Source of the DNA: Hemiscyllium ocellatum
Taxonomy: Eukaryota
NCBI RefSeq assembly: GCF_020745735.1
Contig: NC_083438.1
Coordinates: 32,424,443 to 32,488,442, forward strand
Direction: 5' to 3'
DNA: 64,000 nt
The stretch's first letter is position 1. The number at the start of each line of letters is the position of its first letter. Of the stretch, positions 1,059-58,082 are shown piece after piece. Position numbers and translations under genes: made by a program. The notes beneath the pieces were generated by a model that was given only the letters and a program-made list of their open reading frames with translations, had not been told where the DNA came from and ran no database searches.

Positions 1059-1164
1059 CATCTTTGTCGCTTTAGGACAATGTAACCCACAATTCCTGCT
1101 ACAATAAAAACAGCAGCAATCCCGATTCCCAAACCAACTCTTGCTCCAGGGGAGAGTCCAGGAC
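1059..1164 (-). CDS. Gene A transmembrane exon (GPGLSPGARVGLGIGIAAVFIVAGIVGYIVLKRQR)
   Basis: ctctgtctctag|GT acceptor and TG|gtgagt donor; 106 nt, phase 1 to 2; about 22 hydrophobic residues then a KRQR stop-transfer; paralogous to three other exons. Confidence 0.88.
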
Positions 1165-1469
1165 CTAGAGACAGAGTGAAGCCATTAACAGACTGGGACA
1201 CACAAACAAAACTAACAGCAGAGACCTTCAGCACCTAGTGTTTCAGAACCAGCCCCAGTACAAACAGATCCCTGGGTAATTCTAGTCCTGGAGGGATGTG
1301 GGAGGTTAGATCCCAATAAGCTCTCACACACCAGACCACCCCACAGCTCCTTGCACACACACACACACACAATGTGAGTGATACATGCTTTCCAATAGCG
1401 AGAACTGGGCACTTACAAGCAGCAGTTTCCCTTCAATTAAACTGAACAGCAACTGAAATTATTGTTAAT

Positions 1470-1800
1470 TTTACAAGGAAAGGAAAGTGTTTCACACTGC
1501 CTTCAATCCAGGGTCACGACCTCCAGATTATATCTCTCTGTGCCCTCACCTCTGGTGGGCCTGTCCTTCCAGTGGGACAGGACGTACCCAGGGATGGTGA
1601 TAGGGGAGTCTGGGATGTTGTGTTATTTCTGTCAGTGTGACTATGTCCCACAGTGTCCCAAGTTGGACCCCAGTCCCCAGATGTTAGTGAGGGGGACTTT
1701 GCAGGGTCAGCTGGGCTGGCTGTGACATTGCTGTGTCCTGATTCGATGCCTGGCTCACAGCCAGTGGTCCATTCAGTTTTATTGTGGATTTTCCTGTCTA
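1470..1800 (-). mobile_element. Old degenerate LINE endonuclease remnant in the intron (paralogous copies 2270-2660, 18540-18850, 22880-23680, 40200-40500)
   Basis: Translates with frameshifts as DIVTLTE...ITIPGYVLSHWKDRPTRG, the N-terminal APE motif of CR1/L2-group LINEs. Confidence 0.6.
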
Positions 1801-2055
1801 GGAGTTTGATTGATGTGAAACTAATTGATATGCTCAGATAATTAAAAAGGGCAAGTAAACTTTCCCCAGGTTAATGTGGACTGAAGGGTCTCTTTCCATG
1901 CTGTATAGCTCTATAACTCTATGGGACTCTCACTGAGTCATTCTTTGGTAAAATATCACAAAGCATTTCAAACTTTCCAATGTTCCTCCCTGTCTATCCA
2001 ACATGATCCAATGTAAGAGCTGAAAACACATGCAGTAGTTTAGAAACATATTTAC

Positions 2056-2094
2056 CTGGTACAGGTGTTTTCGGTCCAGGTGTAGGAGCTCGCT
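2056..2094 (-). CDS. Gene A 39-nt stalk mini-exon (ERAPTPGPKTPVP)
   Basis: ttttctttag|AG acceptor and CAG|gtaaat donor; phase 1-1; conserved in B and C; joins V to TM in frame. Confidence 0.8.
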
Positions 2095-2689
2095 CTAAAG
2101 AAAACATCGTGTGGTAAGTACGGTGTGTGAAACAAACTACAGAAATGTTCAGAGACTCTATCGGGCTTCAGGGAAACACACCCAGGGAGGAATGAGGCTC
2201 AGGTCAGACTGATCAGGAGGGATCAGGAACAGGAACAGGATCGGGAGTGAAAATTCCAACAGGATTGCATTAACTGTGAAGGGTAGAATGGAAGTTTTCC
2301 AGAGTGACCCTGAGCAGGATCATTCCCAGCAGCTTACATCCCCCTGTGGAAAGAATCCTCACAGGATCCTGGGCTGACTGGGATACACTTTCAAGGACAG
2401 TGCACTGGGTCTTGGAAAGGCTGCTTGGGAGGGGCTGTGGGTCCCTCCTCCTTCCCCCTAACCTCTGGAGGCATAAGGACACAGCCTGTGATGGTGACAG
2501 TGCAGTCTCTGGTGGAAGGGGATTCTCTCAGTAAGGCTCTGTTACACAGCCCAACGTACAGATGTTACTGATGGATCTTTGTAAAGTTGACTTGATTGAG
2601 TGTGTCTCTGCAATTCAGTCCCTGGTTCAAAGCCAGTGGTCTGTTGGGTTTTATTTATGTTCCTCTTTGTAATGGTGAGACAAACTCAT

Positions 2690-2995
2690 TTCCCTCGGAG
2701 GTAATTTGCCAAATCAGAAAAATGTCCCCCAGGTTGGTGTGGGACTGGAGTCACATAGAGACCAGACCGGGTAAGGACGGCAGGTTTCCTTCCCTAAAGG
2801 GACATGAGGGAACCAGTTGGTGTTTTACAACAATCCAACAGCTTCATGGTCAGCAGTTCTGAGGAAGGGTCACTCAACCCAAAACATTCATTCTGATTTC
2901 TCTCCACAGATGCTGCCAGATCTACTGAGCTTTTCCAGTAATTTCTCTTTTTGTTTCTGATTTACAGCATCTGCAGTTTTTTTGATTTTTATTTA
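2690..2995. mobile_element. SINE fragment plus Penelope-type terminal fragment with a degenerate hammerhead-like core
   Basis: 2700-2860 matches the SINE at 63.5k; 2860-2995 has CTGAGGAAGGGTC..ACCCAAAAC followed by the cagatgctgccaga..cagcatctgcag tail seen at 32.2k; copy at 23690-23970. Confidence 0.5.
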
Positions 2996-3151
2996 GCTTC
3001 ATGGTCTCTTTTATTGCGGCTGAATTTATATTTCCAGATTATAATTCAAATACACTACTTACATTGAGAGAGAGTGGCATACAACCCCTGCACAAACACA
3101 GACAGAAAATCACAGATTAAATACTAAACATCAGAAGGAGATCGCTCTCAC

Positions 3152-3490
3152 CTTTTACAGAGAGATCGACAGAATCAAACTGCTCCAAATTTAGATCCAC
3201 TCTCTTTTCAATCCAACACCGATACACACCCTGGTCTGTCACCCTGAGGTCAGAGATCAGAACTGACCAGTTCCCTTGTTCCAGTTGATCTTTGAACAGG
3301 TTCGCTCGGTTTCTGAACCGTGGGTCTTGTTGGGCCAAATCATCATTCCCATCGACAAACACGTATAAAATTTCCTCCTTCTGTGTGCTCCAGATTACCA
3401 GTAAATCAGAGACTGGGACATTCCCTTTGTAGGTACAGGGCAGCACAACCTGCTCCCCAAGGAACCCAGAAACTGGGACAGGCGAGTCAC
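3152..3490 (-). CDS. Gene A IgV exon (V1), B7/butyrophilin-like V-set domain
   Basis: ttccag|GT GAC acceptor and AAAG|gtgag donor; 339 nt, phase 1-1; B-strand LPC, C-strand W, QDPRFRNRANLF, GNWS, DxGxYxC. Motifs resemble the CD276/VTCN1/BTN V domain; orthology not assignable by eye. Confidence 0.92.
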
Positions 3491-5640
3491 CTGGAATAGA
3501 TTGAAAGGATTTATCCACAGATAGAACCTCCCTGCTGGTACATCACATCCCAAGCTTCACACGGTTACACTGTGATGCTGGATTTACAAGAAGCTCTGAT
3601 CAGTAACTCACTGCTTTCATTTCTGGGGGAAGGTTAAAGCTCAGACATTGAGGGTCTTCAACTAAAAGCAGCTTGTGCTGGATATTTGTCAGCACTGAGC
3701 AGCTGGACAGCACTTTGAATCACATGGTTCCCATTTGGACACCCACTGGGAGACTGGGGAGCGGTTGGGAGGGAAGGTGCACTGTGGGAGGTGGAACTGA
3801 GCAGCCAAAAAACCTGGAAAGGATAAAGACAGAAATGGGAGGGGTGGGGGAGTGCACCCCAGGATGTGCAGAGAGTTTGGGACAGGCTGTGGGGACCTTA
3901 CCCTCCTCCCCCACACACTCAGAATCCTAAGATCCAGAGCTTCATCCCCACTCCCACGATCTGAGACAATTCCCACCTCCATTTGATCCCAGGAGATTCC
4001 CAGATTCCTGATCCCAGTGCTCAGGGCTCACTCTCCCCTCCCACTGTCACTGAGTGTAGTTCAGTGTCCAGCTGCCTCTGATCACATCCCAGGGGTTAAC
4101 CTGAAGACATTGAGTGCCTTCCTTTCATTGCATTCTTCATAGAGAGAAATCTGAGGTACATGTACAGTTAGTGAACCCACTCAGATCTATTACTTTCTTT
4201 ACACACAGAACAAATCAAGTCTTTGATTTTCACATTCTCTATATTTACAGTCAACCTCTTGGCATTTAGCTGAGGCGTCAGCGAGGTCCAGTTACTGCCT
4301 GAACCCCTGTTATTCTCCAGCAGAACGACCTTACACGGTGGTCTTTCCCCGCTGCACCTTGGCAGCAGCTGCCCCAAGCTGTAGGAAAGGCAACGTGGAG
4401 ACACACCACACAGAAGATTTAACACAACGCACGCAATTTTAACACCCATTTTAAAGTTTATGAGGTTAGCAATGGCCATTCACCAATGGTCCAGTCACTG
4501 GGGGGACTGTCTGCACCCCCTTGTGGGTGAGCTGTTGGACCCCCGCAGGGCTGAGGTAGCCGTCCCCTTCCTCACTGCGGCCATTTTCCCGCTCTGGTGA
4601 GAACAAGGTCAGCAGAGTCCAGTTCTGAGTCTGACAGAGGGACTGTCGGAGGATTGCGGCTCCCAGTTACCTGGAGCTGTGGGCCAGTGGGTATCCCCTG
4701 GTTCTCACCGAGTGGGGCTGGACTTTACCAATCCCCTCGGGAGGGTGGGGCCCATTGTTTCCGGGTTGGGGAACTCTTCTCCTTTCCCCCGTGGTGCTCC
4801 GCCTCTTTTTCTGATGATGACCATCCTTCCTTCCCCACCCCCCCACCCCTGAACTTCACCAGAAGAGCTGCTGGTGTCATCCTCATGTAGCTGTCTGTTT
4901 CCCCTTTACTGTGAGGCTGTGGTGGGATTCCCTTTTCCTGTTGTGTTTCACCGGTATCCACTCCCCCACCTCCTTGGTCTCCTCCTCCTCCATTGTCTCC
5001 CTCTGTCCAGCTGGAGGTGGGGTCGGTTGCTGGGCCTCCATGCTGGCTGCTGTCTGTTCCACTCCAGCCTGTCCTTTCTGGGAGCCTCTTGTCTCGGTTC
5101 CCTTCCTGGATGGGGGTGTGGCACCCCCCCACCCCCATCCTATAATGGGCCGGCCTTGTACATGTGACCGTCACCTTACAGTCCGCTGCCATATGTCCCG
5201 CCCTCCCACAGGTTCAGCACACTCTAAGCTGCCCTGTATATGTCAGGTCACCTCTGCTCCTTCCAATCGCGAAACTGGAGGGCGGGTGGAGAATGTTCCC
5301 CCTGGCATCCACCCTCAGGATCACATTCACCAGCCGCCTACTGGTCCAGGTTCCGAAGGCATCCACAACATCAGTGCTGTCTCCTTCAAGCTACATGTAC
5401 CTTCCCAGGAAGGTGACAACATCTACTGCTGGGCCATGGGGGTTGTACATATGGATTGGAACAGCCCAGCTCCTCTGTGCAGGGAGAACACACAATGACA
5501 CCCCTGACAGGATGGAGAACAGAGCCACACCTTCTTTCTCCTCAAATACCTTCAGAAGATGCTCACATTGCTTCACACTCCTAAAGGTCACATTGAAACA
5601 TCCACCACTGGGGAAATCCTGCCCTCAGAGGATTGTTTTT

Positions 5641-6980
5641 TAAATTTCAAAAATACACTTTTATTCATAAAATATTTTGATGATCTGTACAATTGGTGGT
5701 GCCATTCACAGGCACACCTTGCATTTCTTTACATAGAGATGGGAATTAATCATTCCTATATACGGGTCTGTACGTTCACCACCCATATATTTAGCTGAGG
5801 CTTCAGCGGAGCCCACTTACTGCGTGGCCACCCTGTTCTTCTTAGGCAGGCAGACATTACACGATGGTCTTTCCCCACTGTGCCTTGGCGGCAGCTGACC
5901 CAAGCTTCCCTCAACACGTAGTCCTGGACCTTGGAATGTGCCAGTCCGCAACACTCAGTTGGGGTCAACTCCTTCAGCTGGAAGATCAACAGGTTTCGGA
6001 CAGACCAAAGGGCGTCTTTCACGGAGTTGATGATCCTCCAGGAGCAGTTGAAGTTCGTCTCAGTGTGCGTCCGGGAACAGACCGTAGGGCACGGAGTCCC
6101 GCGTCACGGAAGATGGCCCGGGTGACTGCAATGGCACAGGTTCTGGGAATAGGCCAGATCTGTGTTACATATAACAGCAATAACAGTGCCTCACACCTGA
6201 TGAGCAGGTTTTTACCCATGACAGAGAGTGACCATAGCTTCCATCTGCCCAGTTTCTGCCTCACTTTCTTGAAACGCTCCCCCCAAGAACTGGCACACAT
6301 CCCAGCCCCCCCGAACCAAATACCCAGCACCTTCAGGTGGTCGGTCCTGACGGTGAAGGGGATCAAGGATTGGTCGGCCCAGTTCCCAAAGAGCATGGCC
6401 TCACTCTTGCGTCGGTTTACCTTGGCCCCCGAGGCCCGTTCAAAATGGTCACATATGCACAGGTGTCTGCGCATGGACAGTGGATCCGAGCAGAAAACGG
6501 TGACTTCATCCATGTACAGGGAGGTCTTAACCTGCAGGCCCCTACTGCCAGGAATAGTCACCCCTCTGGCGGGTCTCTGGCACTGTGAGGCAGCAGTGCT
6601 AACCACTGTGCCACCGTGCCGCCCATGGTATAAGACAGATGTCAGAGGTAGTTTCTTTATTCAGAGAGTAGTAAGGGCATGGAATGCTTTGCCTGCAACA
6701 GTAGTAGATTCACCAAGTTTAAGTGTGTTTAAGTCGTCATTGGACAGGCATATAGACGTACATGGAATAGTGCAGGTGGGATGGGCTTCAGATTAGTATG
6801 ACAGGGCGGCACAACATCGAGGGCTGAAGGGCCTGTACTGCGCTGTAATGTTCTATATATGAATGATTACTCAATCGCTGTTTGCAAAGAAACGGAATGC
6901 TTATGTATGTGTGGCATGACCAATTGTACAGATCATCAAAATATTTTTATGAATAAAGTATATTTTTGAAATAAAAAAAG
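5641..6980. mobile_element. Nested Tx1 3' fragments plus HE1 SINE/CR1 tail pieces
   Basis: ORF 6019-6606 has RT motif SLYMDEV..GAKVNRRKSEAM; Tx1 tails (ttttatgaataaagt) in opposite orientations at 5641-5700 and 6900-6980; CR1 3' end at 6620-6860. Confidence 0.75.
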
Positions 6981-7093
6981 CCAGCATGAAGATCCACCAA
7001 GAGCTGGCCTGCCCAACCAATGATCCTCCAACGCCCAATCACCATCCAGCGATGATCCCAATAGCTCTGATGACTCACAACTCAACTCCCACA

Positions 7094-7139
7094 CTGATCA
7101 GAACAGATTCTAGACTTAGCCAAAAGGACAAAAAATGAT
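7094..7139 (-). pseudogene. RNU2: U2 snRNA 5' fragment (head of the Tx1 element; 6-nt deletion)
   Basis: ATCATTTTTTGTCCTTTTGGCTAAG------TCTAGAATCTGTTCTGATCAG aligns to U2 nt 1-52 (ATCGCTTCTCGGCCTTTTGGCTAAGATCAAGTGTAGTATCTGTTCTTATCAG). Confidence 0.75.
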
Positions 7140-7326: not shown

Positions 7327-7399
7327 CTGAAACAGCAGCAACAACATTTAGCAGCAGCAGCAGCAGCAGGGGGGGGAGTAGTTTCTGTGAGCTGTGTCC
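7327..7399 (-). CDS. Gene A leader (signal peptide) exon GHSSQKLLPPLLLLLLLNVVAAVS(G)
   Basis: tgttttcttgttgcag| acceptor and TCAG|gtcagt donor; 73 nt, phase 0 to 1; joins V1 in frame; same length in B and C. Confidence 0.85.
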
Positions 7400-8018: not shown

Positions 8019-8102
8019 CTGCAGCTCCTTTCCCGGGACCGGGACTGCGATCAGGATCAGAGGCAGACACTGACAGGAGACCGAGAAGCTGCTGAGAAAC
8101 AT
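8019..8102 (-). CDS. Gene A candidate first coding exon (MFLSSFSVSCQCLPLILIAVPVPGKELQ)
   Basis: ATG plus 28 codons ending CAG|gtactt in phase 0, matching the leader exon; conserved in B and C. Donor is weak; an alternative start is an in-frame upstream ATG (MSQPFSW..) read into the leader exon. Confidence 0.35.
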
Positions 8103-8325
8103 TTGGTAAAACTCCATGTTGGAGGGAGAGCAGGGTGTGTCTCAGTCAGATACAGCCCAGATCCTGCCCAACATTACACCCCGCTGCTTCACTCCTTGTC
8201 AAGGACTCAGCGAGAGTGTGTTTACGTGAATTGATACAGATGTTAAACTGACCCATGTTGGGGGAGGGGGGTGGTCATTCCCTTTCCCTTCCCTCTCTCT
8301 CCACTCCGGATCTGGACCCACAGTT

Positions 8326-11440: not shown

Positions 11441-11481
11441 TAAATGATGTAACCTGTACTCTGCTTGTGTCTCTCTTCTTG

Positions 11482-11656
11482 GAATTGTGTTCGAAGCCGA
11501 CACTCCAGTAATCGAAATGAAGCATCACATGGTGACCCTTTGAGAGAGGTGGCCTGTTCAGGTGAAGCACGGAGCCTTGTACCAACAGCACCTGAGCATC
11601 AGGATGGAGCGGCTGGAGAACAAAACCTTCTGGGGAACGGGGCTGTCCAGCACTGA
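11482..11656 (+). pseudogene. Orphan cytoplasmic-tail exon with mutated acceptor
   Basis: Encodes NCVRSRHSSNRNEASHGDPLREVACSGEARSLVPTAPEHQDGAAGEQNLLGNGAVQH*, paralogous to the tails of B, C and D; acceptor reads cttcttg|G versus cttctag|G in gene D; no plus-strand TM or V exon upstream. Confidence 0.75.
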
Positions 11657-13413
11657 CTGAGTTTCCCCCGCACTGAGCCTGGCTCAGGGAGGGGGGGAAT
11701 CAGCCCAGTGTTGGGGGGATCGAGTGATTCCTGATGGAAAGTCTGAGCTCAGGATTGGGATCAACAATCACCTTCCAATTTGCACAAATCCTTCTGAGCA
11801 GCACAACCTCAGGAGGGAAACTCCCAGTGGGAGTGTTATCCAATTACTAGAAAAACTGTCCAAGTATTTCATTCTCTGTATTATTCAGCATTACTGTTAC
11901 AGTCTGTGTCCAAACACTGTCTCAGGGTTCAGCTGTGAAACCCTAACTCTAACCCCCAATGCTCATCCTGTGAGATATTTTTCACAGATTTTTTCTTTAT
12001 TATTAATTGAGAACTTTAATAATTTGTGCTCAGTGTGGGTGATACTGCCAGGGATCCATTTATTGTCCATGTGGCCTTGACCAACTGCAGTCCTTATAGT
12101 GATGGTGCTCCCACACTGGGGAACATGGGAAGAGGCTTCAGAAACTCCCCCTGCAGCAGCACCTACTGGGCAAAGCCAGGAACTACATCACAACCACCTG
12201 GTGAAGAGGCACTTGGAAAGGTAGTGGTTCCAAATGAACCTGTTGGACTATAACCTGATGTTGTGTGATTTTTAACTTTACAATACTACAGGAAATAATG
12301 TAATGTAATGAAGGTATTAATAATATATTGATCTTGTGCTGATGTGTCCTGTATGTTTATTTCTGACTTTTGTGTACGAAACAAGATGGTAAATATTTTA
12401 TATGCAGATATTTCTATATTTTTATCCTGGATATTTCTTACATTTCTACCTCTGCTTTTTGCTCTGAGCTGTGATTAAAGAAAAGCTGGTCCTGATGTTA
12501 GTGGGTCTACAGTCCGATGTTTAATGACTGCTGGTCACTGCATGAACAGAGGGGCTGCTGTCTACAGGCAGTAAGTCCCTGATACGACTTGGAGTGAATG
12601 GAATTGGCTGAAGACTGGGATCAGTGATTGTGGGAATCTCAGGAGGAGCAGGAACATTTATCCAGTCGGTGTTCCTGGCTGGAGATGTTCTGTGAACTCT
12701 TCAGTCTTTTACATTGTGCCAAGGGAAGGTACATAGGAGCAGGAGTCGGCCAATTAAGTTGTTTGAGCCTGGTCTGCCATTCTCAATCCTGGCTGATCAT
12801 CTACTTCAAAAGAACAAAACAACAAAAGTACAGCACAGGAACAGGCCCTTCAGCCCTCCATCATCATGCTTTCACTAAACTAACAAACAAACCTTCTGCC
12901 CTTATTCAGTCTGTATCCCTCTATTCCCTCCCTATTTATGACATCATCTGGATGCCTCTTCAATGTCACCAATGTGCCTGCTTCCACCACCTCTTCTGGC
13001 AGTGTGTTCCAGGCTCCTACCACAGTGTGAAAACCTTCCCGCGCACATCTGCTTAAACCTCCCCCTCTCACCTTGTACCTGTGTCCCCTTGTAATTGAAA
13101 CTTCAACCCTGGGGAAAAGCCTCAGACTATCCACCCTATCCATGCCTCTCATAATGCTGTAGCCCTCTGTCAGGTCTCCTCTCAGCCGCTGTCTTCCCAG
13201 TGAAAACAACGCTAGTCTTTTTAACCTTTCTTTGTGGCCAATGCCCTCGAGATCTGGCCCCATCCTGGTGACCCTTCTCTGTGCTCTCTCCATGTCCTTC
13301 TGGTGGCATGGCAACCAAACCTCATTACCATATTCCTGTCCCTCCCCCATATCTCTCGCTGTGATCAGTGACTAGACATTGATCAAGCTCTGTCTTCCAT
13401 TTGCCTCTGGATT
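11530..13413. repeat. Left arm of a large inverted repeat (right arm about 15085-16690)
   Basis: Mirror ORFs 12880-13350(-) and 15148-15618(+) are nearly identical; arms include the tail exon, 3' UTR and a CR1 fragment; spacer about 1.7 kb. Confidence 0.9.
12820..13300 (-). mobile_element. CR1 3' fragment (mirror copy at about 15200-15680, plus)
   Basis: ERAQRRVTRM..ERLKRLALFSLGRQRLRGDL..TRGHRYK, the CR1 ORF2 C-terminus. Confidence 0.85.
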
Positions 13414-16400
13414 GTCATGGGGGAACCGCTCTCCAACACAACGGGAAGAGGGACCCCATTGATACTGTCAAGCCAAAAGGATCATTGAAGCTGGGGATGG
13501 GATGATGGTCCGGGGCTGGAAGGGATGGGGAGCTGTCAGAAACACACCCCTTTGTGGGGTACACACCTCCAGGGGTTCCATGAGCAGGAGAAAGAGAGCC
13601 AGTGCTGAGGGATGTGCACTGGGTTAGGAGTGACCACCTTTCCAATGCACTGACCAGAAGTGTGTGTGGGAGCTGGGGAAGCCTCGAACCATTTCATAAA
13701 TCCTGTCACCTGATGCTGCTGCAGAAACCCATGGAAACCACTGAGACTGAGAGCTGGAGCAATCTGGGACTCAAATCAGATCGCTGTTCCCCCCTCCCCC
13801 CTAGGCAGAGACTTCTAACAAACCTGTTCGGGGATGTTAGGACACATCTCTGGAGAAGGTGGGATTTGAACTACGGCCAGAGGTGGGGTCACTACCACAA
13901 CATCCATCCCTTGTAGAATAAAGAGGGTGTCTGACTGGAAACAGCACTCACCTCCGTTTTGCAGAATCATTTTGGGGAAGATGAATTGGGGAGGGAGGGG
14001 GTGTGGGGTCAGGAGGAGAGTTTACCAGGGGCCAGGGGACTAGAGGGGGCCCGGATCAGCCGGCTGGACTGACTGCCCACGGCCGGTAGGCCCGAATCCC
14101 CGGGGTGTGGGTACATCGATGGGCGGTGTGTGTGTGTGTGTGTGAGAGAGAGGGGAGAGAGTCACCGTGGGCCAGGGGCCAGGGAAGGGCTGGAGAGAAA
14201 AGGAGAAGCCCCACACAAGGCTGAGGGACATGGAAAGGAGACAGGCCCTTTAGGTGGGGAGCAGAGGGCTCAATATCTAAACTTCATGGGGAGAAGGGAA
14301 CAACGTTAATGGAGAGATTGAAGGGAAAAACAGGTGGGATTTCCCAGACTCACCAGAGGAGGGAAAGATCTGGTGGGAAACAGAAACAGGGGCAGGAGTC
14401 AGGGAAAGGCTTGGATAAATCATTTTGGAAATATCAGAGTTTTCTGGAATTCTAGGAAAAGGAAAGTGTGAGTGTGTGTGTGTGTGTTCAGAAACTGCAG
14501 GATTATTCCAGAGAGGGAGGGAGAAACGAGGGGCAGGATGAGACAGAAATGTAGAACATGGCAGTGGGCTGGGGAGAGGGGGCTTCCTGAGGGCACATTG
14601 TGCTGGGATATGGAGGGCTGGGGAAAAGGAGGCAGCTGTAACTGATAGAGAGCTCTTTCCTCCTGCACCCTCACTTTTGGGTCAATATCCCCCTCAACCA
14701 CCAGCATTTAAATCAAACAGAGAATCTGATCATAATGACAGTGCTACGTGTGGGAACTTACTGTGTGCAAATTAACCACCATCATTCCGAGATTACAACA
14801 GTCCCTTCACTGACCGGGAAGCATTGTGGGATGTGGTACAGAGGTGAAAGGTGCTAGAAAATGTAAACCCTTCCTGAAATGGAGTCAACATAAAAGAAAG
14901 TGTTCACACCATCAAAGCTCTGCAATGCTGCTGCATTCAGCCTTTAATGGTGGGGAACCATTCACCATCAAGTGGGAGGTGACTCCATGTCCATCCGTAT
15001 CCTCAATGATGGGGAAACCTGCATCTGCTCAAAGAGACGGTGTGTGTGCGTCAGAGGGAGAGAGAGAACACAGGTACAGGAAGCAATTCAGAGGCAAATG
15101 GAAGACAGAACTTGGTCAATGTCTAGTCACTGATCACAGGGAGAGATATGGGGGAGGGGCAGGAATATGGTAATGAGGTTTGGTTGCCATGCCACCAGAA
15201 GGACATGGAGAGAGCACAGAGAAGGGTCACCAGGATGGGGCCAGATCTCGAGGGCATTGGCCACAAAGAAAGGTTAAAAAGACTAGGGTTGTTTTCACTG
15301 GGAAGGCAGCGGCTGAGAGGAGACCTGACAGAGGGCTACAGCATTATGAGAGGCATGGATAGGGTGGATAGTCAGAGGCTTTTCCCCAGGGTTGAAGTTT
15401 CAATTACAAGGGGGCACAGTAACAAGGTGAGAGGGGGAGCTTTAAGGAGATGTGTGCGGGAAGGTTTTCACACTGTGGTAGGAGCCTGGAACACACTGCC
15501 AGAAGAGGTGGTGGAAGCAGGCACATTAGTGACATTGAAGAGGCATCCAGATGATGCCATAAATAGGGAGGGAATAGAGGGATACAGACTGAATAAGGGC
15601 AGAAGGTTTGTTTGTTAGTTTAGTGAAAGCATGATGATGGAGGGCTGAAGGGCCTGTTCCTGTGCTGTACTTTTCTTTTGTTGTTTTGTTCTTTTGAAGT
15701 AGATGATCAGGCAGGATTGAGAATGGCAGACCAGGCTCAAACAACTTAATTGGCCGACTCCTGCTCCTATGTACCTTCCCTTGGCACAATGTAAAAGACT
15801 GAAGAGTTCACAGAACACCTCCAGCCAGGAACACCGACTGGATAAATGTTCCTGCTCCTCCTGAGATTCCCACAATCACTGATCCCAGTCTTCAGCCAAT
15901 TCCATTCACTCCAAGTCGTATCAGGGACTTACTGCCTGTAGACAGCAGCCCCTCTGTTCATGCAGTGACCAGCAGTCATTAAACATCAGACTGTAGACCC
16001 ACTAATCTCAGCACCAGCTTTTCTTTAATCACAGCTCAGAGCAAAAAGCAGAGGTAGAAAAGTAAGAAATATCCAGGATAAAAATACAGAAATATCTGCA
16101 TATAAAATATTTACAATCTTGTTTCATACACAAAAGTCAGATATAAACATACAGGACATATCAGCACAAGATCATTACATTATAACACAGCAGGAAATAA
16201 AGTTAAAAATGACACAACATCAGATTATAGTCCAACAGGCTCATTTGGAACTACTACCTTTAGAAGTGCTTAAATATTTCACAGGATTAGCATTGGGGGT
16301 TAGAGTTAGGGTTACGCAGCTGAACCCCGGAGACAGGGTTTGGACACAGACTGTAACAGTAATGCTGAAATATAACGCAGCGGATGAAACACTTGGTCCA

Positions 16401-16598: not shown

Positions 16599-16719
16599 TC
16601 AGTGCTGGGCAGCCCCGTTCCCCAGAAGGTTTTGTTCTCCAGCCGCTCCATCCTGATGCATGGTCACCTCTCTCAAAGGGTCACCATTCAATGCTGCCAT
16701 CTTGTGTAGGTTCTGTTTC
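16599..16719 (-). CDS. Gene B cytoplasmic-tail exon (RKQNLHKMAALNGDPLREVTMHQDGAAGEQNLLGNGAAQH*)
   Basis: tctctctccatag|G acceptor, phase 2 matching the TM exon; 39-nt in-frame deletion relative to gene C. Confidence 0.8.
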
Positions 16720-18090: not shown

Positions 18091-18193
18091 CTTCTTTGTC
18101 GCTTTAGGACAATGTAACCCACAATTCCAACAACAAAAACAGCAGCAATCCCGATTCCCAATCCAACTCTTGCTCTAGTTGTGACTCCAGGAC
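18091..18193 (-). CDS. Gene B transmembrane exon (GPGVTTRARVGLGIGIAAVFVVGIVGYIVLKRQR)
   Basis: tctctag|GT acceptor and AG|gtgagt donor; 103 nt, phase 1 to 2. Confidence 0.88.
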
Positions 18194-19121
18194 CTAGAGA
18201 CAGAGTGAAGCCATTAACAGACTGGGACACACAAACAAAACTAACAGCAGAGACCTTCAGCACCTAGTGTTTCAGAACCAGCCCCAGTACAAACAGATCC
18301 CTGGGTAATTCTAGTCCTGGAGGGATGTGGGAGGTTAGATCCCAATAAGCTCTCACACACCAGACCACCCCACAGCTCCTTGCACACAAAACACTCACAC
18401 ACACACACACAGCCCCACAATGTGATTGATTCATACTTTCCAACAGCGAGAACTGGGACTGACCAGCAGCAGTTTCCCTTCAATTAAACTGAACAGCAAC
18501 TGAAATTATTGTTAATTTTACAAGGAAAGTAAAGTGTTTCACACTGCCCTCAATCCAGGGTCACGACCTCCAGATTATATCTCTCTGTGCCCTCACCTCT
18601 GGTGGGCCTGTCCTTTCAGTGGGACAGGACATACCCAGGGATGGTGATCGGGGAGTCTGGGATGTTGTGTTATTTCTGTCAGTGTGACTATGTCCCACAG
18701 TGTCCCAAGTTGGACCCCAGTCCCCAGATGTTAGTGAGGGGGACTTTGCAGGGTCAGCTGGGCTGGCTGTGACATTGCTGTGTCCTGATTCGATGCCTGG
18801 CTCACAGCCAGTGGTCCATTCAGTTTTATTGTGGATTTTCCTGTCTATGGGTGTGGTATAAACTGATTGATGTGGTCAATTAAAGAGGGCAGTTAAATCT
18901 CTCCCCCCTCCCCACTTTGTGTGGAACTGGAGTCACATATATTGAACAATGTGAATTTAAGTTCTGAAAGTACCACAGTAGGATTTGATCTCTCACTCTC
19001 TCTCTCTCTCTGTTATTAATCCAGATTTCTGGATTACACGTCTAGTAACATATCCCCGGCACTCCCATCCCCCAAAAAATCAGAGATCCAATACAGAATC
19101 CCTGAAACAGAAACCTCTTAT

Positions 19122-19454
19122 CTGTTACAGAGAGATGAACACGTTGATGAAAGTGTAGACCCGTCCTGTCAGAAATCTGACACTGATACTCGTCCTGGTC
19201 TGTCTCCATGAGGTCAGAGATCAGAACTGACCAGTTGCCTTGCTCCTGATGAGCTTTGAACAGGTTTGTTCTGTTTCTGACACGTGGGTCTTGTTCTCTT
19301 AAATCATCGCTCCCATTCACAAAAGTGTGTACCATTTCACTCTTGGGTGTCCCCCAGATTACCAGTAAATCAGAGACTGGGACATTCCCTTTGTAGGTAC
19401 AGGGCAACACAACCTGCTCCCCAAGGAACCCAGAAACTGGGACAGGCGAGTCAC
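19122..19454 (-). pseudogene. Gene B second IgV exon (V2): open frame, non-canonical donor (ACAG|ataag)
   Basis: Intact acceptor, both Cys and Trp present, 333 nt phase 1-1; donor position has AT where paralogs have GT (compare GAG|gtgagatatttctgtttcagg at 40032). Confidence 0.75.
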
Positions 19455-22436: not shown

Positions 22437-22475
22437 CTGATACATGTGTATTCGGTCCAGGTGTAGGAGCTCGCT
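22437..22475 (-). CDS. Gene B 39-nt stalk mini-exon (ERAPTPGPNTHVS)
   Basis: tttccttcag|AG acceptor and CAG|gtaaat donor; phase 1-1. Confidence 0.8.
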
Positions 22476-24134: not shown

Positions 24135-24479
24135 CTTTTACAGAGAGATCAACAGAATCAGACTGCTCTGAATAAAAAAGCACACCAACTCTCTTTTGAA
24201 TCCAACACTGATACACATCCTGGTCTGTCTCCCTGAGGTCAGAGATCAGAACTGACCAGTTCCCTTGTTCCAGTTGACCTTTGAACAGGTTCGCTCGGTT
24301 TCTGAACCGTGGGTCTTGTTGGGCCAAATCATCATTCCCATCGACAAACTCGTATAAAATTTCCTCCTTCTCTGTCCTCCAGATTACCAGTAAATCAGAG
24401 ACTGGGACATTCCCTTTGTAGGTACAGGGCAGCACAACCTGCTCCCCAAGGAACCCAGAAACTGGGACAGGCGAGTCAC
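24135..24479 (-). CDS. Gene B first IgV exon (V3)
   Basis: ttccag|GT GAC acceptor and AAAG|gtgag donor; 345 nt, phase 1-1; intact C-W-C triad. Confidence 0.92.
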
Positions 24480-29492: not shown

Positions 29493-29671
29493 AGTGCCTT
29501 CCTTTCAGCTCTCTCTCATGATCACGGTGTGTAATGTGAACCTATTGTGTCCCACTCCCTCAGTGGGTCCACTTGTAGCCCACACAGCACCTTAAAGCAA
29601 GAGGAATTCCTGATTCCCCCCACCCCCAGCCTTTGATCCTGCTGAAATGTTCCAGCACTCACAGCACTGAC

Positions 29672-29744
29672 CTGAAACAGCAGCAACAACATTTAGCAGC
29701 AGCAGCAGCAGCAGCGGGGCGAGTAGTTTCTGTGAGCTGTGTCC
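29672..29744 (-). CDS. Gene B leader exon (GHSSQKLLAPLLLLLLLNVVAAVS-G)
   Basis: Same splice signals and 73-nt length as in gene A. Confidence 0.85.
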
Positions 29745-30233
29745 CTGCAACAAGAAAACACAGTGAGTCCCTTTCCAACAGATTCCCTTCCTGATCAGGT
29801 TGATGATCCCGCTCCGCCCTGTCCCCGGGTGATGCCTGACAGATACAGCCCATGAGAAGGGCTGGGACATGGGGACTCGGAGTGAGAGGGAGGGCGGGGA
29901 CAGACAACGCCGTCAGTAAAATGACTGTTTTCTTGCTGTTTGCCAAATTAATCTTTAGAGATCGTTCTGCATCACTTTACAACCGCCGCAGTCTCGGTCT
30001 AACCCTCTTTTCAATGTTTCAATTCAACCTCCCCCTCCCTCAGTTCACTCACAGATCACTTTATAAACTTCTGAGAAGTTCCAGCCCTTTCTGTCTGTCT
30101 CTGAGATTGTCAGCATTTCCTTTTAATAAAGAGGTGAGTGCTGGGGGGGTGATGAGGGAGAGAGAGTTTCCCCCCAGATCCCCCTCCCTCCCTCCCTCCG
30201 TGTCCCCGGGTGGGAGACACTGACAGTAAGTAC

Positions 30234-30317
30234 CTGCAGCTCCTTTCCCGGGACTGGGACTGCGATCAGGATCAGAGGCAGACACTGACAGGAGACCGAG
30301 AAGCTGCTGAGAAACAT
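30234..30317 (-). CDS. Gene B candidate first coding exon
   Basis: ATG plus 28 codons, CAG|gtactt donor, phase 0; paralog of 8019-8102. Confidence 0.35.
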
Positions 30318-30441
30318 TTGGTAAAACTCCGTGTTGGGGGAGAGCAGGTTGTGTCTCAGTCTGATACAGGAAACAGTGAGGTCTGCAGATGCTGGAGTCA
30401 GAGCTGAAAAGGTGTTGCTGGAAAAGCGCAGCAGGTCAGGG

Positions 30442-30644: not shown

Positions 30645-31439
30645 CAGCGTTCCGCAAAGACCACTCCCCCAAGTCCCTCCTCCCTACCTTGTTTCTTTGC
30701 CTGATTTTCTCAGAAACAGCCCGGAGTCATTTCTCTCATTCCTGACAACAAGTAACAAACTTGCAGACTGACCCACATTGTGGGGAGACAGGGGTGCACC
30801 AGTTCATGCCCCTTTTTCCTCTCTGCTCTCCCGGTTCTGGACCCACAGTTTTCCGGCAGTCCCCACTCGGATCACTGTCTCACTGCAATCCCTTCAGGGG
30901 AAAAGCAGCTTGGACCCGGCTTTTCCCGACAGAGGCTGCACCCGGATCGCTCACTCCTTCCCTCCCCCCCCTCGCTATGAGAATGGGAGAGCCCAGAGCC
31001 CGCCTCCTCCCTCTGATACAGTGTGTGGGGGGGGGGGGGGTAGTGTCCAATTGCTCCGCTTTACATTTGGTCTAACTCCGTGTTGGAGGGAGAGCAGGGT
31101 GTGTCTCAGTCAGATACAGCCCGGAGCTGACCCTGCAGAGACCGCGCAGCGCCTCCTGATCACCCCCAAAACTCCCATTACTCACTGTCTGACCAAGACG
31201 GGGGGTGGGGGTCATTCCCTTTCCCTTCCCTCTCTCTCCACTCCGGATCTGGACACACAGTTTCCCGGGAATCCTCACTCGGATCATTACTTTACTCCAT
31301 TCCCTTTGACCCAGGTTTTCCAGGTTCTGGATCAGTGTTGCTGGAAGAGCACAGCAGGTCAGGCAGGGTCCAAGGAGCAGCCAATCCCTTCATCAGGAAG
31401 GAAACAGGCCCCGCCCAGACACGTGACATGTGACACGTG

Positions 31440-32389: not shown

Positions 32390-32473
32390 ATGTTTCTCAG
32401 CAGCCTCTCGGTCTCCTGTCAGTGTCTGCCTCTGATCCTGATCGCAGTCCCGGTCCCGGGAAAGGAGCTGCAG
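32390..32473 (+). CDS. Gene C candidate first coding exon (MFLSSLSVSCQCLPLILIAVPVPGKELQ)
   Basis: ATG plus 28 codons, CAG|gtactt donor, phase 0. Confidence 0.35.
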
Positions 32474-32966: not shown

Positions 32967-33039
32967 GGACACAGCTCACAGAAACTACTCCCCCCGCTGC
33001 TGCTGCTGCTGCTGCTAAATGTTGTTGCTGCTGTTTCAG
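32967..33039 (+). CDS. Gene C leader exon (GHSSQKLLPPLLLLLLLNVVAAVS-G)
   Basis: ttcttgttgcag| acceptor and TCAG|gtcagt donor; 73 nt. Confidence 0.85.
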
Positions 33040-53109: not shown

Positions 53110-54980
53110 TTTGGACAGGTTTAAGAGTCATAGAGATGTACAGCATGGAAACAGATCCCTCGGTCCAACCTGTCCATGCCGACCAGATATCCCAACCCAA
53201 TCTATTCCCAGCTGCCAGCATCCAACCCATATCCCTCCAAACCCTACATATTCATATACCCATCCAAATGCCTCTTAAATGTTCCAATTGTACCAGCCTC
53301 CACCACATCCTCTGGCAGCTCATTCCATACACGTACCACCCTTTGCGTGAAAAAGTTGCCCCTTAGGTCTTTTTTAAATCTTTCCCCTCTCACCCTAAAC
53401 TTATGCCCTCTAGTTCTGGACTCCCCGATCCCAGGGAAAACAGCCCCAGCCTGTTCAGCCTCTCCCTCTAACTCAAATCCTCCAACGCTGGCAACATCCT
53501 TGTAAATCTTTTCTGAACCCTTTCAAGTTTCACAACATCTTTCCGATAGGAAGACCAGAATTGCACGCAATATTCCAACAGTGGCCTAACCAATGTCCTG
53601 TACAGCCGCAACATGACCTCCCAACTCCTGTACTCAATACTCTGACCAATAAAGGAAAGCATACCAAACGCCTTCTTCACTATCCTATCTACCTGCGACT
53701 CCACTTTTAAGGAGCTATGAACCTGCACTCCAAGGTCTCTTTGTTCAGCAACACTCCCTAGGACTTTACCATTAAGTGTATAAGTCCTGCTAAGATTTGT
53801 TTTCCCAAAATACAGCACTTCACATTTATCTGAATTAAACTCCATCTGCCACTTCTCAGCCCATTGGCCCATCTGGTCCAGATCCTGTTGTAATCTGAGG
53901 TAACCCTCTTCACTGTCCACTGCACCTCCAACTTTAGTGTCATCTGCAAACTTACTAACTATACCTGCTATGTTCACATCCAAATCATTTATGTAAATAA
54001 GAAAACGTAGAGGGCCCAGCACTGATCCTTGTGTGCAATTCACAGGCCTCCAGTCTGAAAAACAACCCTCCACCACCACTCTCTGTCTTCTACCTTTGAG
54101 CCAGTTCTGTATCCAAATGGCTAGTTTTCCTGTTATTCCATGAGATCTAACCTTGCTAATCAGTCTCCCATGGGGAACCTTGTCGAACGCCTTACTGAAT
54201 TCCATATAGATCACATCTACTGCTCTGCCCTCATCAATCTTTTTTGTTACTTCTTCAAAAAGCTCAATCAAGTTTGTGCGACATGATTCCCCATGCACAA
54301 AACCATGTTGACCATCCCTAATCAGTCTTTGCCTTTCCAAATACATGTACATCCTGTCCCTCAGGATTCCCTGCAACAACTTGCCCACCACTGAGGTCAG
54401 GCTCACCGGTCTATAATTCCCTTGTTTTTACCGTCGGCTTGTCTTTACCGTCCTTCTTAAACAGTGGCACCATGTTTGCTAACCTCCAGTCTTCCGGCAT
54501 CTGACCTGTGACTATGAATGATACAAATATCTCAGCAAGAGGCCCAGCAATCACTTCTCTAGCTTCCCACAGAGTTCTCGGGTACACCTGATCGGGTCCT
54601 GGAGATTTATCCACTTTTCAAGATATCCAGCACTCCCTCCTCCGTAATCTGGACATTTTGCAAGGTGTCACCAATTATTTTCCTACAGTCTATATCTTCC
54701 ATATCCTTTTCCACAGTAAATACTGTTGCAAAATATTCATTTAGTATCTCCCCCTTTTTCTGTGGCTCCACACAAAGGCCGCCTTGCTGATCTTTGAGGG
54801 GCCCTATTCTCTCCCTAGTTACCCTTTTGTCCTTAATATATTTGTAAAAACCCTTTGGATTCTCCTTAATTCTATTTGCCAAAACTATCTCATGTCCCCT
54901 TTTTGCCCTCCTGATTTCCCTCTTAAGTAAACTCCTACTTCCTTTATAGTCTTCTAAGGATTCACTCGATCTATCCTGTC
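53110..54980 (-). mobile_element. CR1-type LINE ORF2 (RT) with internal deletions
   Basis: ORFs 53468-54406, 54411-54614 and 54607-54882 carry FSKAFDKVPHG, FADDTK and KSPGPD. Confidence 0.92.
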
Positions 54981-55370
54981 TATATGCGAGGGTGTGAAAT
55001 GATGGAAAGCTGCTGACATTAGACAGGTAGAACTTTTTTCAAAACTGATGTCTAATTCTTTTCAATCTGCATTGAAACTTGACATCACTAGAGCTGGCGA
55101 ATTGATTCAGTACAGAGTGTGGACTGGGCTGAGCAGGACAGAGCAGGCATGGGGAATAGCTTTCAAACTTCAGGTTTCTGAATGCAGGCTAGAGTTCACA
55201 ACTCCCATCAACTATCAATCATCGAAGGGTTGGCCCAACTTGACAAACAATCCATGGGGTTGGAGATAATGACCCCCTCCTGTGAAGATGGCCAAGTGGT
55301 GAGTGCAGGGAGCAGGATTAAACATTGCTGGAATCATCGGAATCAAGGAATCGGATCTCACCAGCCATTT

Positions 55371-55713
55371 TTAATGGCCCCCAGAGTGGATCTGAGTTTC
55401 TGAAAACCGACGCCGAACTTTACGGGATTGTGTTGGTGGCCAGGACTTGGGCCTTGGGTTGTCATCGCTGATCCCAGCCTCTCCGTGGATATTCACTGAG
55501 CAGCTCATGGAAAGAGCTGATTGTTCCCTCAGTGACTCGGTCACAGGGTTAGAGTAACTCATGGGGGTTTCATCGACAGCTCCAGCCCCCAGAGGGGCTC
55601 GTTCTCCAGCCGCTCCATCCTGATGATCGGCTGATGTTGGACAAAGTGCTTCCCCTTCACTCGGATGAGACACATCTCTCAAAGGGATTTGTGCAGGTCG
55701 TCTGTTTGTATTC
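55371..55713 (-). CDS. Gene D long cytoplasmic-tail exon (about 114 aa)
   Basis: gatttttcttctag|G acceptor, phase 2; WNTNRRPAQIPLRDVSHPSEGEALCPTSADHQDGAAGE..PMSYSNP..RRRFSETQIHSGGH*; shares the PLR and HQDGAAGE blocks with the other tails. Confidence 0.78.
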
Positions 55714-56497
55714 CTAGAAGAAAAATCAACAAGAATTCATGTTACATTTGAACACGTGTGTAAAGGAACTGTTCAGGAGCACAGACCCATTAAATCACCC
55801 TCAACATCCTGGGGACCAATGGCAGCTGGAAAATGGGTGACAGGAGCTGCACGGTGATGGAGCACAGAGTGTAGAGGAGAGGAGGCTTATAGGGGAGGCA
55901 ATGGGCAAGAGCTGGGCACTGCACAGGAGCTGTGCTGACTGACAGAGAAGTGAGAGAACCCTGCAATTAGGGGCTGTGGGAGGTTACTGAGTATGGTTTT
56001 CAAGGTGAGCTGCTGGCATGGATTGAGGATTGGCTGTCTGACAGAAGGCAGAGAGTTGGGATAAAAGGTTCTCTTTCAGAATGGCAGCTCGTGACAAGTG
56101 GTGCCTCGCAGGGTTCAGTACTGGGGCTGCAGCTGTTCACTATAGAAATTACTGATCTGGATGAACTGGGGGCATTCTGGCTAATGATATGAAGTTGGGT
56201 GGACAGGCAGGTGGTTCACCTAATCCAATAGTTAATAGTTCTTAATAGATCTTAATAGTTCCTCCTCCCACAGTGAAGGGTGCATGTGGGGAGCACAGGG
56301 ATGTGAATGTTGAGGAAAACAAGGAAATCTGAAAGGGTATTCCCAGTGACTGATGCATCTGATGCCTAGGATAAAGGGGAGCTTTGAAAATCCTGGAGGC
56401 AACAGAGCATTTATTTAGCAGCTTTAACACAGAATATAGGAGAGGTAAAACACAATCTGACCCTGAGTGACACACAGGAATTTAAGAATGAGGTATA

Positions 56498-57039
56498 CAG
56501 GCAGCCCCTGCTTTTCGAATGTTCACTTTATGCCAATGTGCTTTTACCAGAGACCGACATTGGGACCTGTTTTTGCGAACTGAAAGAGGATTTTCGGCTT
56601 TTACAAAAAAGCACACACAACTCCTTCCCCGAACGTATTAATAGATGACCCTCTTCCTCTTTCTCCTGCACCCCAGTCTCCCACCTACCCCAACCTCAGA
56701 CCTCTCAGTCTAACATACCATCATCATCATCATCATCACCAGCTCTCAGCCTTCCAGTGTGCTCACTGCGTTTCCTCAGTCTGGTGAATGAAACTACACT
56801 GTACATACATCATTTCCTCTTTCTGCAGGCTGTGTATTTATTGTATCATTGCTGCTTTTTCTATACGTTGGTGTTGTTTTAGGTTTTGTGTGCTATTTGG
56901 TATGACTTGGTTGGGTATTTTTGGGTGTGGGAACTGAAAAGGATTTCCCATATAAATTACTGCTTCTTTGCTTGACGCCATTTCAGCTTACGAAAGGTTT
57001 CATAGGAACACTCTGCTTTCGGACAGTGAGGGATACCTG
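56498..57039. mobile_element. Non-autonomous Tc1/mariner (Tigger/pogo-like) DNA transposon
   Basis: TA|CAGGCAGCCCCTGCTTTTCGAA...TTCGGACAGTGAGGGATACCTG|TA: imperfect TIRs and a TA target duplication. Confidence 0.7.
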
Positions 57040-57979
57040 TACCTTAACAGCCAGCTTCAATGAGCACAGGATGGGTGGGGCTGAGGGCCCATTGACCCCA
57101 GTGTTCAACAGAATGACATTCCCATAAACCCAAACACCATCCAGTCTTTACGAAAGGGACCAAGACCGTACACAGCTCTCCCAAATCCAAGAGAAACTGC
57201 AGCACATCTCTTTCCTCTGACCCATTTGCAATAAAGCCAACCATCCCATTTACCTCCCTCATCCTACCTGTAATTTGGAGATTTATCTACAAATTCCTCT
57301 GAATGACATTCACTGGCCTTTCTCCTTGTAAAAATATTCTTCTTTTCTATTCACACTTCACTTTTTTTAAAAAACACAAACGACTGCAGTTATTATCCAT
57401 ATATTTCTCCAGCGTATTCCTGTTTGCAGCCTCTGTATCCCCCTCACAGCTTACAAAGCTCCGTGGGAAAGTATCAGTAGCAAACTGGGACAATCCCACT
57501 CTATCCCCCCATCTCAGTCACTGATATAGATTGTGAGTCACTGAGGTCCCAGCACTGATCCTTGCAGCACCAGTTACATCCTGACAACTGACAATGACCC
57601 ATTTGTTCCTGCTCTGTTCCTGTCCATTAACCAATCCTCAATCCATGCTATATCACCCCCCAGTCCCCTGGGCCCTCATCTTGTACAACAACCTATTGTG
57701 TGGCACCTTCTCAAATACCTCCTGAAATTCCCAATATATGCCCCATCCTCTGGTTCTCCAGTGGGATAATATTTGCTCCTTTCCAATCCATGGGGACTGT
57801 TCAGCAGCGAGAGGATGACAAGCTGGAAGTGACTGGATGATGCTGCTCAATGACAGGCTGGATTGAAGCATCCTCACAGCTCAGGGAATGGACAGGGACA
57901 GAGCTCAGCAACATTTCACACAATGTTATACAAAGATCAAAGGGTTACCATGGAAACAGTGCAACATTCCAGAACTCAC

Positions 57980-58082
57980 CATCTTTGTCGCTTTAGGACA
58001 ATGTAACCCACAATTCCAACAACAAAAACAGTACCAATCCCGATTCCCAATCCAACTCTTGCTCCAGTGGAGAGTCCAGGAC
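57980..58082 (-). CDS. Gene D transmembrane exon (GPGLSTGARVGLGIGIGTVFVVGIVGYIVLKRQR)
   Basis: tctctag|GT acceptor and TG|gtgagt donor; 103 nt. Confidence 0.85.

Follow-up and report, generated by a model that had tools for sequence, protein, structure and literature searches.

Predicted shark-only membrane proteins with one B7-H3-like V domain and no constant domain in a duplicated locus of Hemiscyllium ocellatum

Introduction

Lymphocyte activation is under the control of molecules of the B7 and butyrophilin (BTN) families, whose early evolution in jawed vertebrates has been little explored. Here we analyse a stretch of 64,000 nucleotides (nt) of DNA from Hemiscyllium ocellatum (assembly GCF_020745735.1, contig NC_083438.1, positions 32,424,443 to 32,488,442 of the forward strand; hereafter the window), in which we find three related genes, termed A, B and C, each with an intact exon for an immunoglobulin variable (IgV, or V) domain. 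The best overall explanation, which we consider likely, is that these genes belong to a shark-only family of small type I membrane glycoproteins that have one B7-H3-like V domain, lack an immunoglobulin constant (IgC) domain and would act as surface ligands or counter-receptors.

The V domains closest to those of the shark family, by sequence and by fold, are found in CD276 (B7-H3), followed by VTCN1 (B7-H4) and PD-L1. A segment of the form ...F/YxNRTxLFxDxLxQGNxS... is common to both groups, with two conserved N-glycosylation sequons in the alignment with CD276. The shark proteins also share the type I membrane topology, short tail and phase-1 exon borders of these B7 proteins; what they lack is the membrane-proximal IgC domain. 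B7-H3, B7-H4 and PD-L1 are conserved, low-copy molecules with V-C ectodomains (V-C-V-C in human B7-H3), whereas the shark family has a Pro/Thr mini-exon or a second V domain after the first V, many copies per genome and an unrelated tail.

Other relatives have dispensed with the constant domain as well. Chicken BG proteins and MOG resemble the shark family in combining a single IgV domain with a transmembrane (TM) segment and no IgC, and the BG genes form a multigene cluster whose membership grows and shrinks and in which hybrid genes arise. However, the tail of BG proteins is a long heptad-repeat coiled coil to which many 21-nt exons contribute, and a second hydrophobic segment is present in MOG. 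The shark tail, in contrast, is encoded by a single exon, measures 40-55 residues and ends in a C-terminal motif of its own, and the shark V domain is nearer to that of B7-H3 than to those of BTN or MOG. Butyrophilins and BTNL proteins (BTN1A1, BTN3A, BTNL2/8) have B7-related V domains, which appear among the PDB matches at 1e-6 to 1e-5, but the shark proteins possess neither IgC nor B30.2/PRYSPRY domains and are therefore not butyrophilins by architecture. VISTA (B7-H5) likewise bears a B7 name and has one IgV domain but lacks IgC. It is a conserved single gene whose product has extra disulfides and a long tail, and, unlike B7-H3, it is absent from the sequence and fold matches of the shark V domain.

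In teleosts, the NILT genes form a lineage-specific cluster of one- and two-V membrane receptors that undergoes birth-and-death evolution (PMC3022915). The shark family resembles NILT, NITR, DICP, CD300-like and skate MDIR receptors in this respect, all of them being lineage-specific clusters of receptors with one or two V domains. These receptors have V domains of other types and signal by way of an immunoreceptor tyrosine-based inhibitory or activation motif (ITIM or ITAM) or a charged TM residue. Unlike NILT, NITR, CD300 and KIR-like proteins, the shark proteins have a B7-type V domain, no tyrosine motif and no charged residue in the TM segment. Both IgC-less B7/BTN relatives (MOG, chicken BG, VISTA) and lineage-specific clusters of the immunoglobulin superfamily (IgSF) are already known, and the shark family is not a new kind of molecule.

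Results

Three genes with a common exon plan

A tblastn search of the window with the gene C product, combined with exon-by-exon reading, located five V exons (V1 to V5), three stalk mini-exons, four TM exons and four tail exons, one of the last being an orphan (Table 1). These exons include three V-bearing genes, and gene A is cut by the window edge. A, B and C share one plan, which consists of a start exon (E1), a signal-peptide exon, a B7-H3-like IgV exon, an exon for a 13-residue Pro/Thr stalk, a TM exon and a tail exon. The six exons of B, the six of C and the five visible exons of A have open frames and retain every AG/GT border, and both cysteines are present. The exon table and a structural model agree on a type I membrane protein with a signal peptide, one TM segment and a short tail, encoded with one domain per exon and phase-1 borders.

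Five of the gene C exons had been proposed in an earlier note made from the sequence of this DNA, as had their junction codons G, E, G and W. All five are found with AG/GT borders and read in one open frame to the TGA stop. The most upstream of them, which that note took for the leader exon, proved to be exon 2. It opens at an acceptor and contains no in-frame ATG, and an ATG at 33018 was rejected as a start because it is out of frame and yields the wrong V frame. The start exon sits 500-620 nt further upstream in A, B and C alike, and its product reads M(EFYQM)FLSS(L/F)SVSCQCLPLILIAVPVPGKELQ. A short start exon of the MAGQEQQ type (7 codons), which is joined to exon 2 in other paralogues, is absent from the window.

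Gene A runs from 8117 to 1059 on the minus strand, with its tail exon beyond the window, and is represented by the NCBI models P0223 (XP_060708607.1) and P0206. The product of the latter, isoform X2, is doubtful, as its alternative first exon supplies no signal sequence. Gene B spans 30317, or 31287 with its alternative first exon, to 16599 on the same strand. Its joined coding sequence is identical, residue for residue, to NCBI protein P0170 (XP_060708491.1). NCBI lists gene B as 'CD276 antigen homolog' isoforms X1-X3 and as 'uncharacterized LOC132833869' isoform X4; X3 omits the stalk and X4 the V exon. Gene C, on the plus strand, has a tail of 53 residues. Its sole NCBI model, P0004 (XP_060708489.1), proceeds from the stalk into the pseudo-V exon V5 and stops there without reaching the TM exon.

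A B7-type V domain with no constant domain behind it

When V4 alone was compared with PDB sequences, the best matches were CD276 (6e-16) and VTCN1 (3e-15), with MOG (1e-10), PD-L1 (6e-9) and BTN (1e-6) behind them. A profile of 35 family V domains gave CD276 at 2e-21, VTCN1 at 4e-18, PD-L1 at 3e-14, pIgR at 1e-10, MOG at 7e-10 and SCN4B at 2e-8, and its alignment with CD276 contains a common NRTxLF and QGNxS segment with the shared sequons NRT and GN(A/W)S. An AlphaFold model of the gene B product, made from a 30-sequence alignment, has one TM helix, formed by residues 191-219, and a V domain whose confidence score (pLDDT) is about 90; the stalk and tail are disordered. Foldseek matched this V domain to the IgV domains of PD-L1 (TM-score 0.80-0.85) and B7-H4 (0.84), and also to MOG. 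Pfam detected a V-set domain alone, and there is no J-like G strand. These comparisons assign the V domain to the B7 type and place it closest to B7-H3, in the order CD276 > VTCN1 > PD-L1 > MOG/BTN.

No IgC exon was found in the window. Among 159 proteins aligned to it by tblastn, comprising the family and the best non-family B7/BTN-like proteins, many of them multi-domain, credible matches were confined to the five V exons. The long open stretches between V and TM exons are V2, V5, repeat-like sequence and a 248-nt block (block X, discussed below); of these, only V2 and V5 are Ig-like. Furthermore, the 76 family proteins that we collected are too short to hold an IgC domain. The tail has no B30.2 domain, ITIM, ITAM or conserved tyrosine, and no Pfam domain. 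A single hydrophobic segment follows the V domain; its core, VGLGIGIAAVFIVAGIVGYIVL, is uncharged and contains the motif VGLGIGI. These results bear out three proposals of the earlier note, namely that the V domain is B7-type, that IgC is missing and that the tail lacks B30.2, ITIM and ITAM. The note had also placed the 13-residue Pro/Thr mini-exon where the IgC would be. The stalk exon is indeed present there, but in B and C a dead second V exon follows it as well.

Remnants of second V exons

The relic V2 in gene B and the pseudo-V exon V5 in gene C both lie between stalk and TM exons (Table 1), and the single-V state of B and C would have arisen by the death of these second V exons. Gene A, in contrast, lacks any second V exon and may either have lost it or never had one. 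In the tree described below, V4 pairs with the first V domain, and V5 with the second, of Chiloscyllium punctatum P0002. Therefore, the gene C lineage had two V exons before the Hemiscyllium/Chiloscyllium split. The 5' half of V5 resembles V1 and V3 and its 3' half the second V of P0002, a half-and-half resemblance that, at the level of sequence, points to gene conversion.

We also examined RNA runs for words sampled from this region. The runs contain 0.19 of the words of 38300-43000 and 0.08-0.16 of those of 39600-40130, the V5 region. For the latter, inclusion of V5 in the mature RNA would predict a share of about 0.6, and the sharing of words with paralogues one of about 0.2. From these shares V5 is probably skipped. 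Such word shares are a weak proxy, many words being common to paralogues and repeats, and gene C expression is not provable from them.

Members in other sharks

A hidden Markov model of the family separates its V domains (116-230 bits) from the next-best protein (64 bits), and the next-best matches outside the family are CD276-, VTCN1-, BTN- or pIgR-like proteins of ray-finned fish. Members occur in ten shark genera (Hemiscyllium, Chiloscyllium, Stegostoma, Rhincodon, Cetorhinus, Carcharodon, Mustelus, Scyliorhinus, Heterodontus and Pristiophorus) and thus span both Galeomorphii and Squalomorphii. An exhaustive HMMER search with V4 and a profile search, both of protein databases, returned no member from rays, chimaeras or bony fish. 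Within these databases the family is lineage-specific, as the earlier note had supposed, but to sharks (Selachii) and not to cartilaginous fish as a whole. All family proteins derive from genome annotations, and none is transcript-derived.

The note's description of a single-IgV family fits A, B and C. Members with the order V-stalk-V-TM-tail are nevertheless widespread, and in H. ocellatum itself they include P0154/P0155. In a quick IQ-TREE phylogeny of 80 V domains, which rests on few alignment columns, the family is monophyletic (SH-aLRT 97). Its V domains thus form a multi-copy clade rather than plain one-to-one orthologues of a known two-domain B7 gene. Most clades within it track shark orders and some cross them, for example a group (99) that unites Scyliorhinus, Cetorhinus and Carcharodon. 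V domains cluster by order, irrespective of whether they come first or second in the protein, a pattern which suggests that exons were repeatedly duplicated or converted. A well-supported clade of single-V genes (98) includes V1 and V3, and V2 has an unresolved position near the second-position domains.

The earlier note expected that automatic annotation would call such genes CD276-, VTCN1- or MOG-like. NCBI does use these names, and adds ICOS ligand-like, CD86-like, SCN4B-like ('sodium channel subunit beta-4-like'), JAML-like, MXRA8-like and, for some members, BTNL2-like or BTN1A1-like. We found no description of the family in the literature on shark MHC, the B7 family, PD-1/PD-L or IgSF; it is already present in NCBI automatic annotation, yet undescribed in the literature searched. 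Several of the collected models are irregular. P0034 (Cetorhinus maximus XP_078389634.1) joins a family V-stalk-TM to a PRDM7/9-like protein and is probably a merged gene model. In P0230 (Mustelus), P0200/P0208 (Heterodontus) and P0029 (Rhincodon) a partial V exon is followed by stalk, TM and tail exons read out of their usual frame; these are likely model artefacts, and they recur across species.

Variable and conserved segments

Averaged over the columns of 35 V domains from the ten genera, identity amounts to 76%. The framework has an entropy of about 0.7 bits, compared with 1.9 for the C-C' segment (positions 34-43) and 2.2 for the FG hairpin (positions 92-108), whose length differs among members as well. 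Both segments belong to the GFCC' face of IgV domains, with which PD-L1 and other B7 proteins bind their receptors, and by this analogy the variable segments of the shark family would map to the same face. The C-terminus is conserved across orders as ...NRHSxNxNEASNxVPLTxVxCxGEARxLVxTAPEHQDGAAGEQNLLGNGxVQH.

Each of the six pairwise comparisons of the four TM exons in Table 1 shows significantly more divergence in the exon than in the 360 nt of intron around it, of which 160 nt lie upstream and 200 nt downstream (Fisher p from 0.03 to 3e-5). These intron flanks are 97-100% identical. For the V exon, excess divergence over its 400-nt upstream intron is not significant; because of this, a case for diversifying selection on V is confined to where the variation sits. 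The older V pairs have dN/dS ratios (nonsynonymous to synonymous divergence) of 0.55-0.9. The term 'fast-evolving', which the earlier note applied to the family, is apt for gene content and for the two loop segments but not for the whole molecule, as the V framework and the cytoplasmic C-terminus are strongly conserved.

Duplications, block X and unit D

The window, of 47% G+C and with no undetermined bases (N), owes its layout to repeated segmental and inverted duplications. A and B are a direct duplication of about 21 kb with about 94% identity. B and C lie head to head about 2 kb apart, placed so by inverted arms (29526-30440 versus 33186-32265, 97.9% identity); the spacer between the arms measures 1.8 kb and contains gene B's alternative first exon. 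An inverted copy of the gene B 3' end is also present (12320-13414 versus 16183-15084, 96.8% identity), and a further partial duplicate surrounds the TM exon at 57.4-58.4 kb. The orphan tail exon belongs to the inverted copy of the gene B 3' end. Its frame and stop are intact and a possible acceptor, ttcgaag/C (the slash marks an exon border), lies in the right phase; no upstream exons for it were found on the plus strand within the window.

Block X is an exon-like sequence in the stalk-to-TM intron of all three genes. Its copies are 99-100% identical, and 83 codons, open in phase with the stalk exon, specify a Ser/Thr/Pro-rich peptide with three N-x-T sequons. Inclusion of the block would shift the frame of the TM exon, and it found no match among the 159 proteins aligned to the window. 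A structured RNA at this position is not supported: Rfam reported no family at gathering score anywhere in the window, and the block folds weakly better than shuffled sequences (z = -2.0). Because other intron stretches beside the TM exon are equally conserved, recent conversion is sufficient to account for the identity of the copies. Block X may be an alternative or poison exon.

The earlier note counted four paralogous units. A, B and C are V-bearing as described, but unit D consists of a TM and a tail exon that are the last two exons of LOC132833867, a gene with orthologues in C. punctatum whose Cys-rich, non-V ectodomain (...CYTIVITEV...) is encoded past the end of the window. A second type of non-V ectodomain is seen in P0224, P0225, P0227 and Rhincodon P0016. 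The chassis of leader exon, stalk mini-exons, TM and tail is thus found with Cys-rich non-V ectodomains as well (P0224, P0233, P0225, P0227), and also in the V-less isoforms P0214 and P0229.

The remainder of the window includes a minisatellite at 46775-47427 (24-bp unit, about 27 copies) that is open on both strands and on the plus strand would encode (SPTPITTG)n. Open frames or fragments of retrotransposon reverse transcriptase (...YMEFSKAFDKVPH...) occur at 53468-54406 (minus strand) and at about 36940-37140 (plus strand), the second within the long intron between exon 2 and the V exon of gene C. A leader-like tblastn match at 37017-37061 was discarded as a reverse-transcriptase fragment of this kind.

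Table 1. Exons and related features of the window (positions in the window; a slash marks an exon border).
Feature	Position	Strand	Remarks
Gene A start exon E1	8019-8117	-	ATG 8117 in NCBI isoform X1 (MEFYQMFLSS...), second in-frame ATG 8102; donor gtactt; P0223 residues 1-33 match 100%
Gene A exon 2, signal-peptide hydrophobic core (GHSSQKLLPPLLLLLLLNVVAAVS)	7327-7399	-	no ATG; ends in phase 1
Gene A alternative first exon (MSACLRRTGWPRS)	5819-5857	-	used by NCBI isoform X2 (P0206)
Gene A V exon V1, 339 nt	3152-3490	-	intact; both Cys; AG/GT borders
Gene A stalk mini-exon (RAPTPGPKTPVP)	2056-2094	-	exon reading
Gene A TM exon, glycine zipper VGLGIGI	1059-1164	-	exon reading
Gene B alternative first exon	31186-31287	-	NCBI isoforms X1, X3, X4
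Gene B start exon E1 (MFLSSFSVSCQCLPLILIAVPVPGKELQ)	30234-30317	-	exon reading
Gene B exon 2, signal-peptide core	29672-29744	-	exon reading
Gene B V exon V3, 345 nt	24135-24479	-	intact
Gene B stalk mini-exon	22437-22475	-	omitted in NCBI isoform X3
Relic second V exon V2, in gene B stalk-to-TM intron	19122-19454	-	open frame, both Cys; donor acag/ATaaga, not GT
Gene B TM exon	18091-18193	-	exon reading
Gene B tail exon with stop	16599-16719	-	39 nt shorter than gene C tail exon; lacks CSGEARSLVPTAP
Gene C start exon E1	32390-32473	+	exon reading
Gene C exon 2	32967-33039	+	'leader' of the earlier note; opens at acceptor; no ATG in frame
Gene C V exon V4	38493-38837	+	intact B7-type IgV
Gene C stalk mini-exon, 39 nt, (E)RAPTPGPNTPVP(G)	38978-39016	+	exon reading
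Pseudo-V exon V5 within gene C	39694-40031	+	338 nt versus 345 (7 nt short), giving a frameshift; second Cys replaced by Tyr
Gene C TM exon	40904-41012	+	exon reading
Gene C tail exon with TGA	42723-42882	+	conserved C-terminal motif ...TAPEHQDGAAGEQNLLGNGAAQH
Unit D TM exon	57980-58082	-	belongs to LOC132833867 (P0233, 250 aa)
Unit D tail exon, 113 codons	55371-55713	-	homologous to family tail up to ...DHQDGAAGE, then diverges, longer
Block X in gene A, 248 nt, exon-like	1550-1797	-	stalk-to-TM intron; borders tag/ and GAG/gtgagg
Block X in gene B, 248 nt, exon-like	18597-18844	-	as above
Block X in gene C, 248 nt, exon-like	40204-40451	+	as above
Orphan tail exon copy	11480-11656	+	within inverted partial duplicate of gene B 3' end

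Discussion

The proteins of this family would reside at the cell surface, where the paralogue-specific GFCC' face would engage a receptor on another cell, as for PD-L1 and B7-H3, and they may serve as B7-like ligands or counter-receptors in immune recognition. The glycine-zipper TM segment would aid self-association. The conserved tail (...TAPEHQDGAAGEQNLLGNGxVQH), which has no tyrosine motif, might bind one common cytoplasmic partner or the sorting machinery; its EQNLL element has the spacing of a dileucine signal and is not strictly conserved.

A number of observations weigh against this reading. The exon junctions of A, B and C depend on sequence logic together with NCBI models. E1 encodes an additional hydrophobic stretch in front of the signal-peptide core, and the shark-only scope of the family applies to protein databases. 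In gene B, the 39-nt deletion in the tail exon removes 13 residues of the conserved motif, and gene C may be non-functional, given that its NCBI model ends in pseudo-V5. The V exons of A and B differ by dN 0.056 and dS 0.041, values near the intron divergence, and the resulting dN/dS ratio of about 1 fits relaxed constraint as well as diversification.

The last three of these points would also be expected if the genes in the window were mostly decaying by-products of segmental duplication, non-functional or barely functional, with the working members elsewhere in the cluster. The debris in the window (the orphan tail, the dead V2 and V5, the inverted partial duplicates) fits such a history, and the RNA word shares are low, if ambiguous. 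We nevertheless regard it as unlikely. A, B and C have kept their open frames, both cysteines and all AG/GT borders, and NCBI lists four isoforms for gene B and two for gene A, which usually reflect transcript evidence. Moreover, the TM exon outpaces its flanking introns in divergence, which simple decay does not predict. The dead V exons raise a different question, whether the real products have two domains (V-stalk-V, or V plus an undetected constant-like domain) and the single-V form is an artefact of exon calling. V-stalk-V proteins are found among many close relatives, including P0154/P0155 and, in C. punctatum, the gene C orthologue; V2 retains an open frame with both cysteines, NCBI links V5 to gene C, and the exon-like block X sits in the same intron. 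Yet V2 has no GT donor, the nearest GT would disrupt the frame, and all four gene B isoforms listed by NCBI leave V2 out. V5 is frameshifted and has lost its second cysteine, gene A is without any second V exon, block X would throw the TM exon out of frame, and IgC-like sequence was not found in the window. A two-domain product is therefore very unlikely.

We give equally little credence to the view that the proteins are non-immune adhesion or channel-accessory molecules of the MPZ, sodium-channel beta-subunit or MOG type. The architecture of one V domain, one TM segment and a short tail is the same, the TM segment of MPZ also has a glycine zipper, several members bear the NCBI names 'sodium channel subunit beta-4-like' or 'MOG-like', and SCN4B and MOG do figure among the PDB profile matches. 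However, CD276, VTCN1 and PD-L1 match better by 4 to 13 orders of magnitude. Many copies per genome, lineage-specific turnover, two-V forms and loop-restricted variation are also unlike the conserved, single-copy MPZ and SCNxB genes. The preferred explanation thus remains the shark-only family of IgC-less, B7-H3-like surface proteins. A bolder version of it, which we think quite improbable as a whole, would make the family a recognition system of the sharks' own, in which a modular chassis (signal exon, Pro/Thr stalks, glycine-zipper TM segment and unnamed tail motif) carries interchangeable cassettes of one V, two V or Cys-rich non-V domains. Such a system would be the shark counterpart of BTN, BTNL, Skint or BG-type ligands by which gamma-delta T cells or natural killer (NK)-like cells are selected or triggered, and it would signal through the new tail motif.

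For comparative immunologists, the family provides one named target in place of scattered and misleading automatic labels. Its members make up a discrete branch of B7-H3-like V domains, confined to sharks, in which the constant domain has been lost, one-V and two-V forms occur and the tail motif has persisted across the Galeomorphii/Squalomorphii split. The locus also illustrates how a family can be remodelled by exon death, inverted duplication, gene conversion and the swapping of ectodomain cassettes on a common chassis. If the V domains bind shark lymphocytes, the family would represent an independent, IgC-less solution to B7-type signalling.

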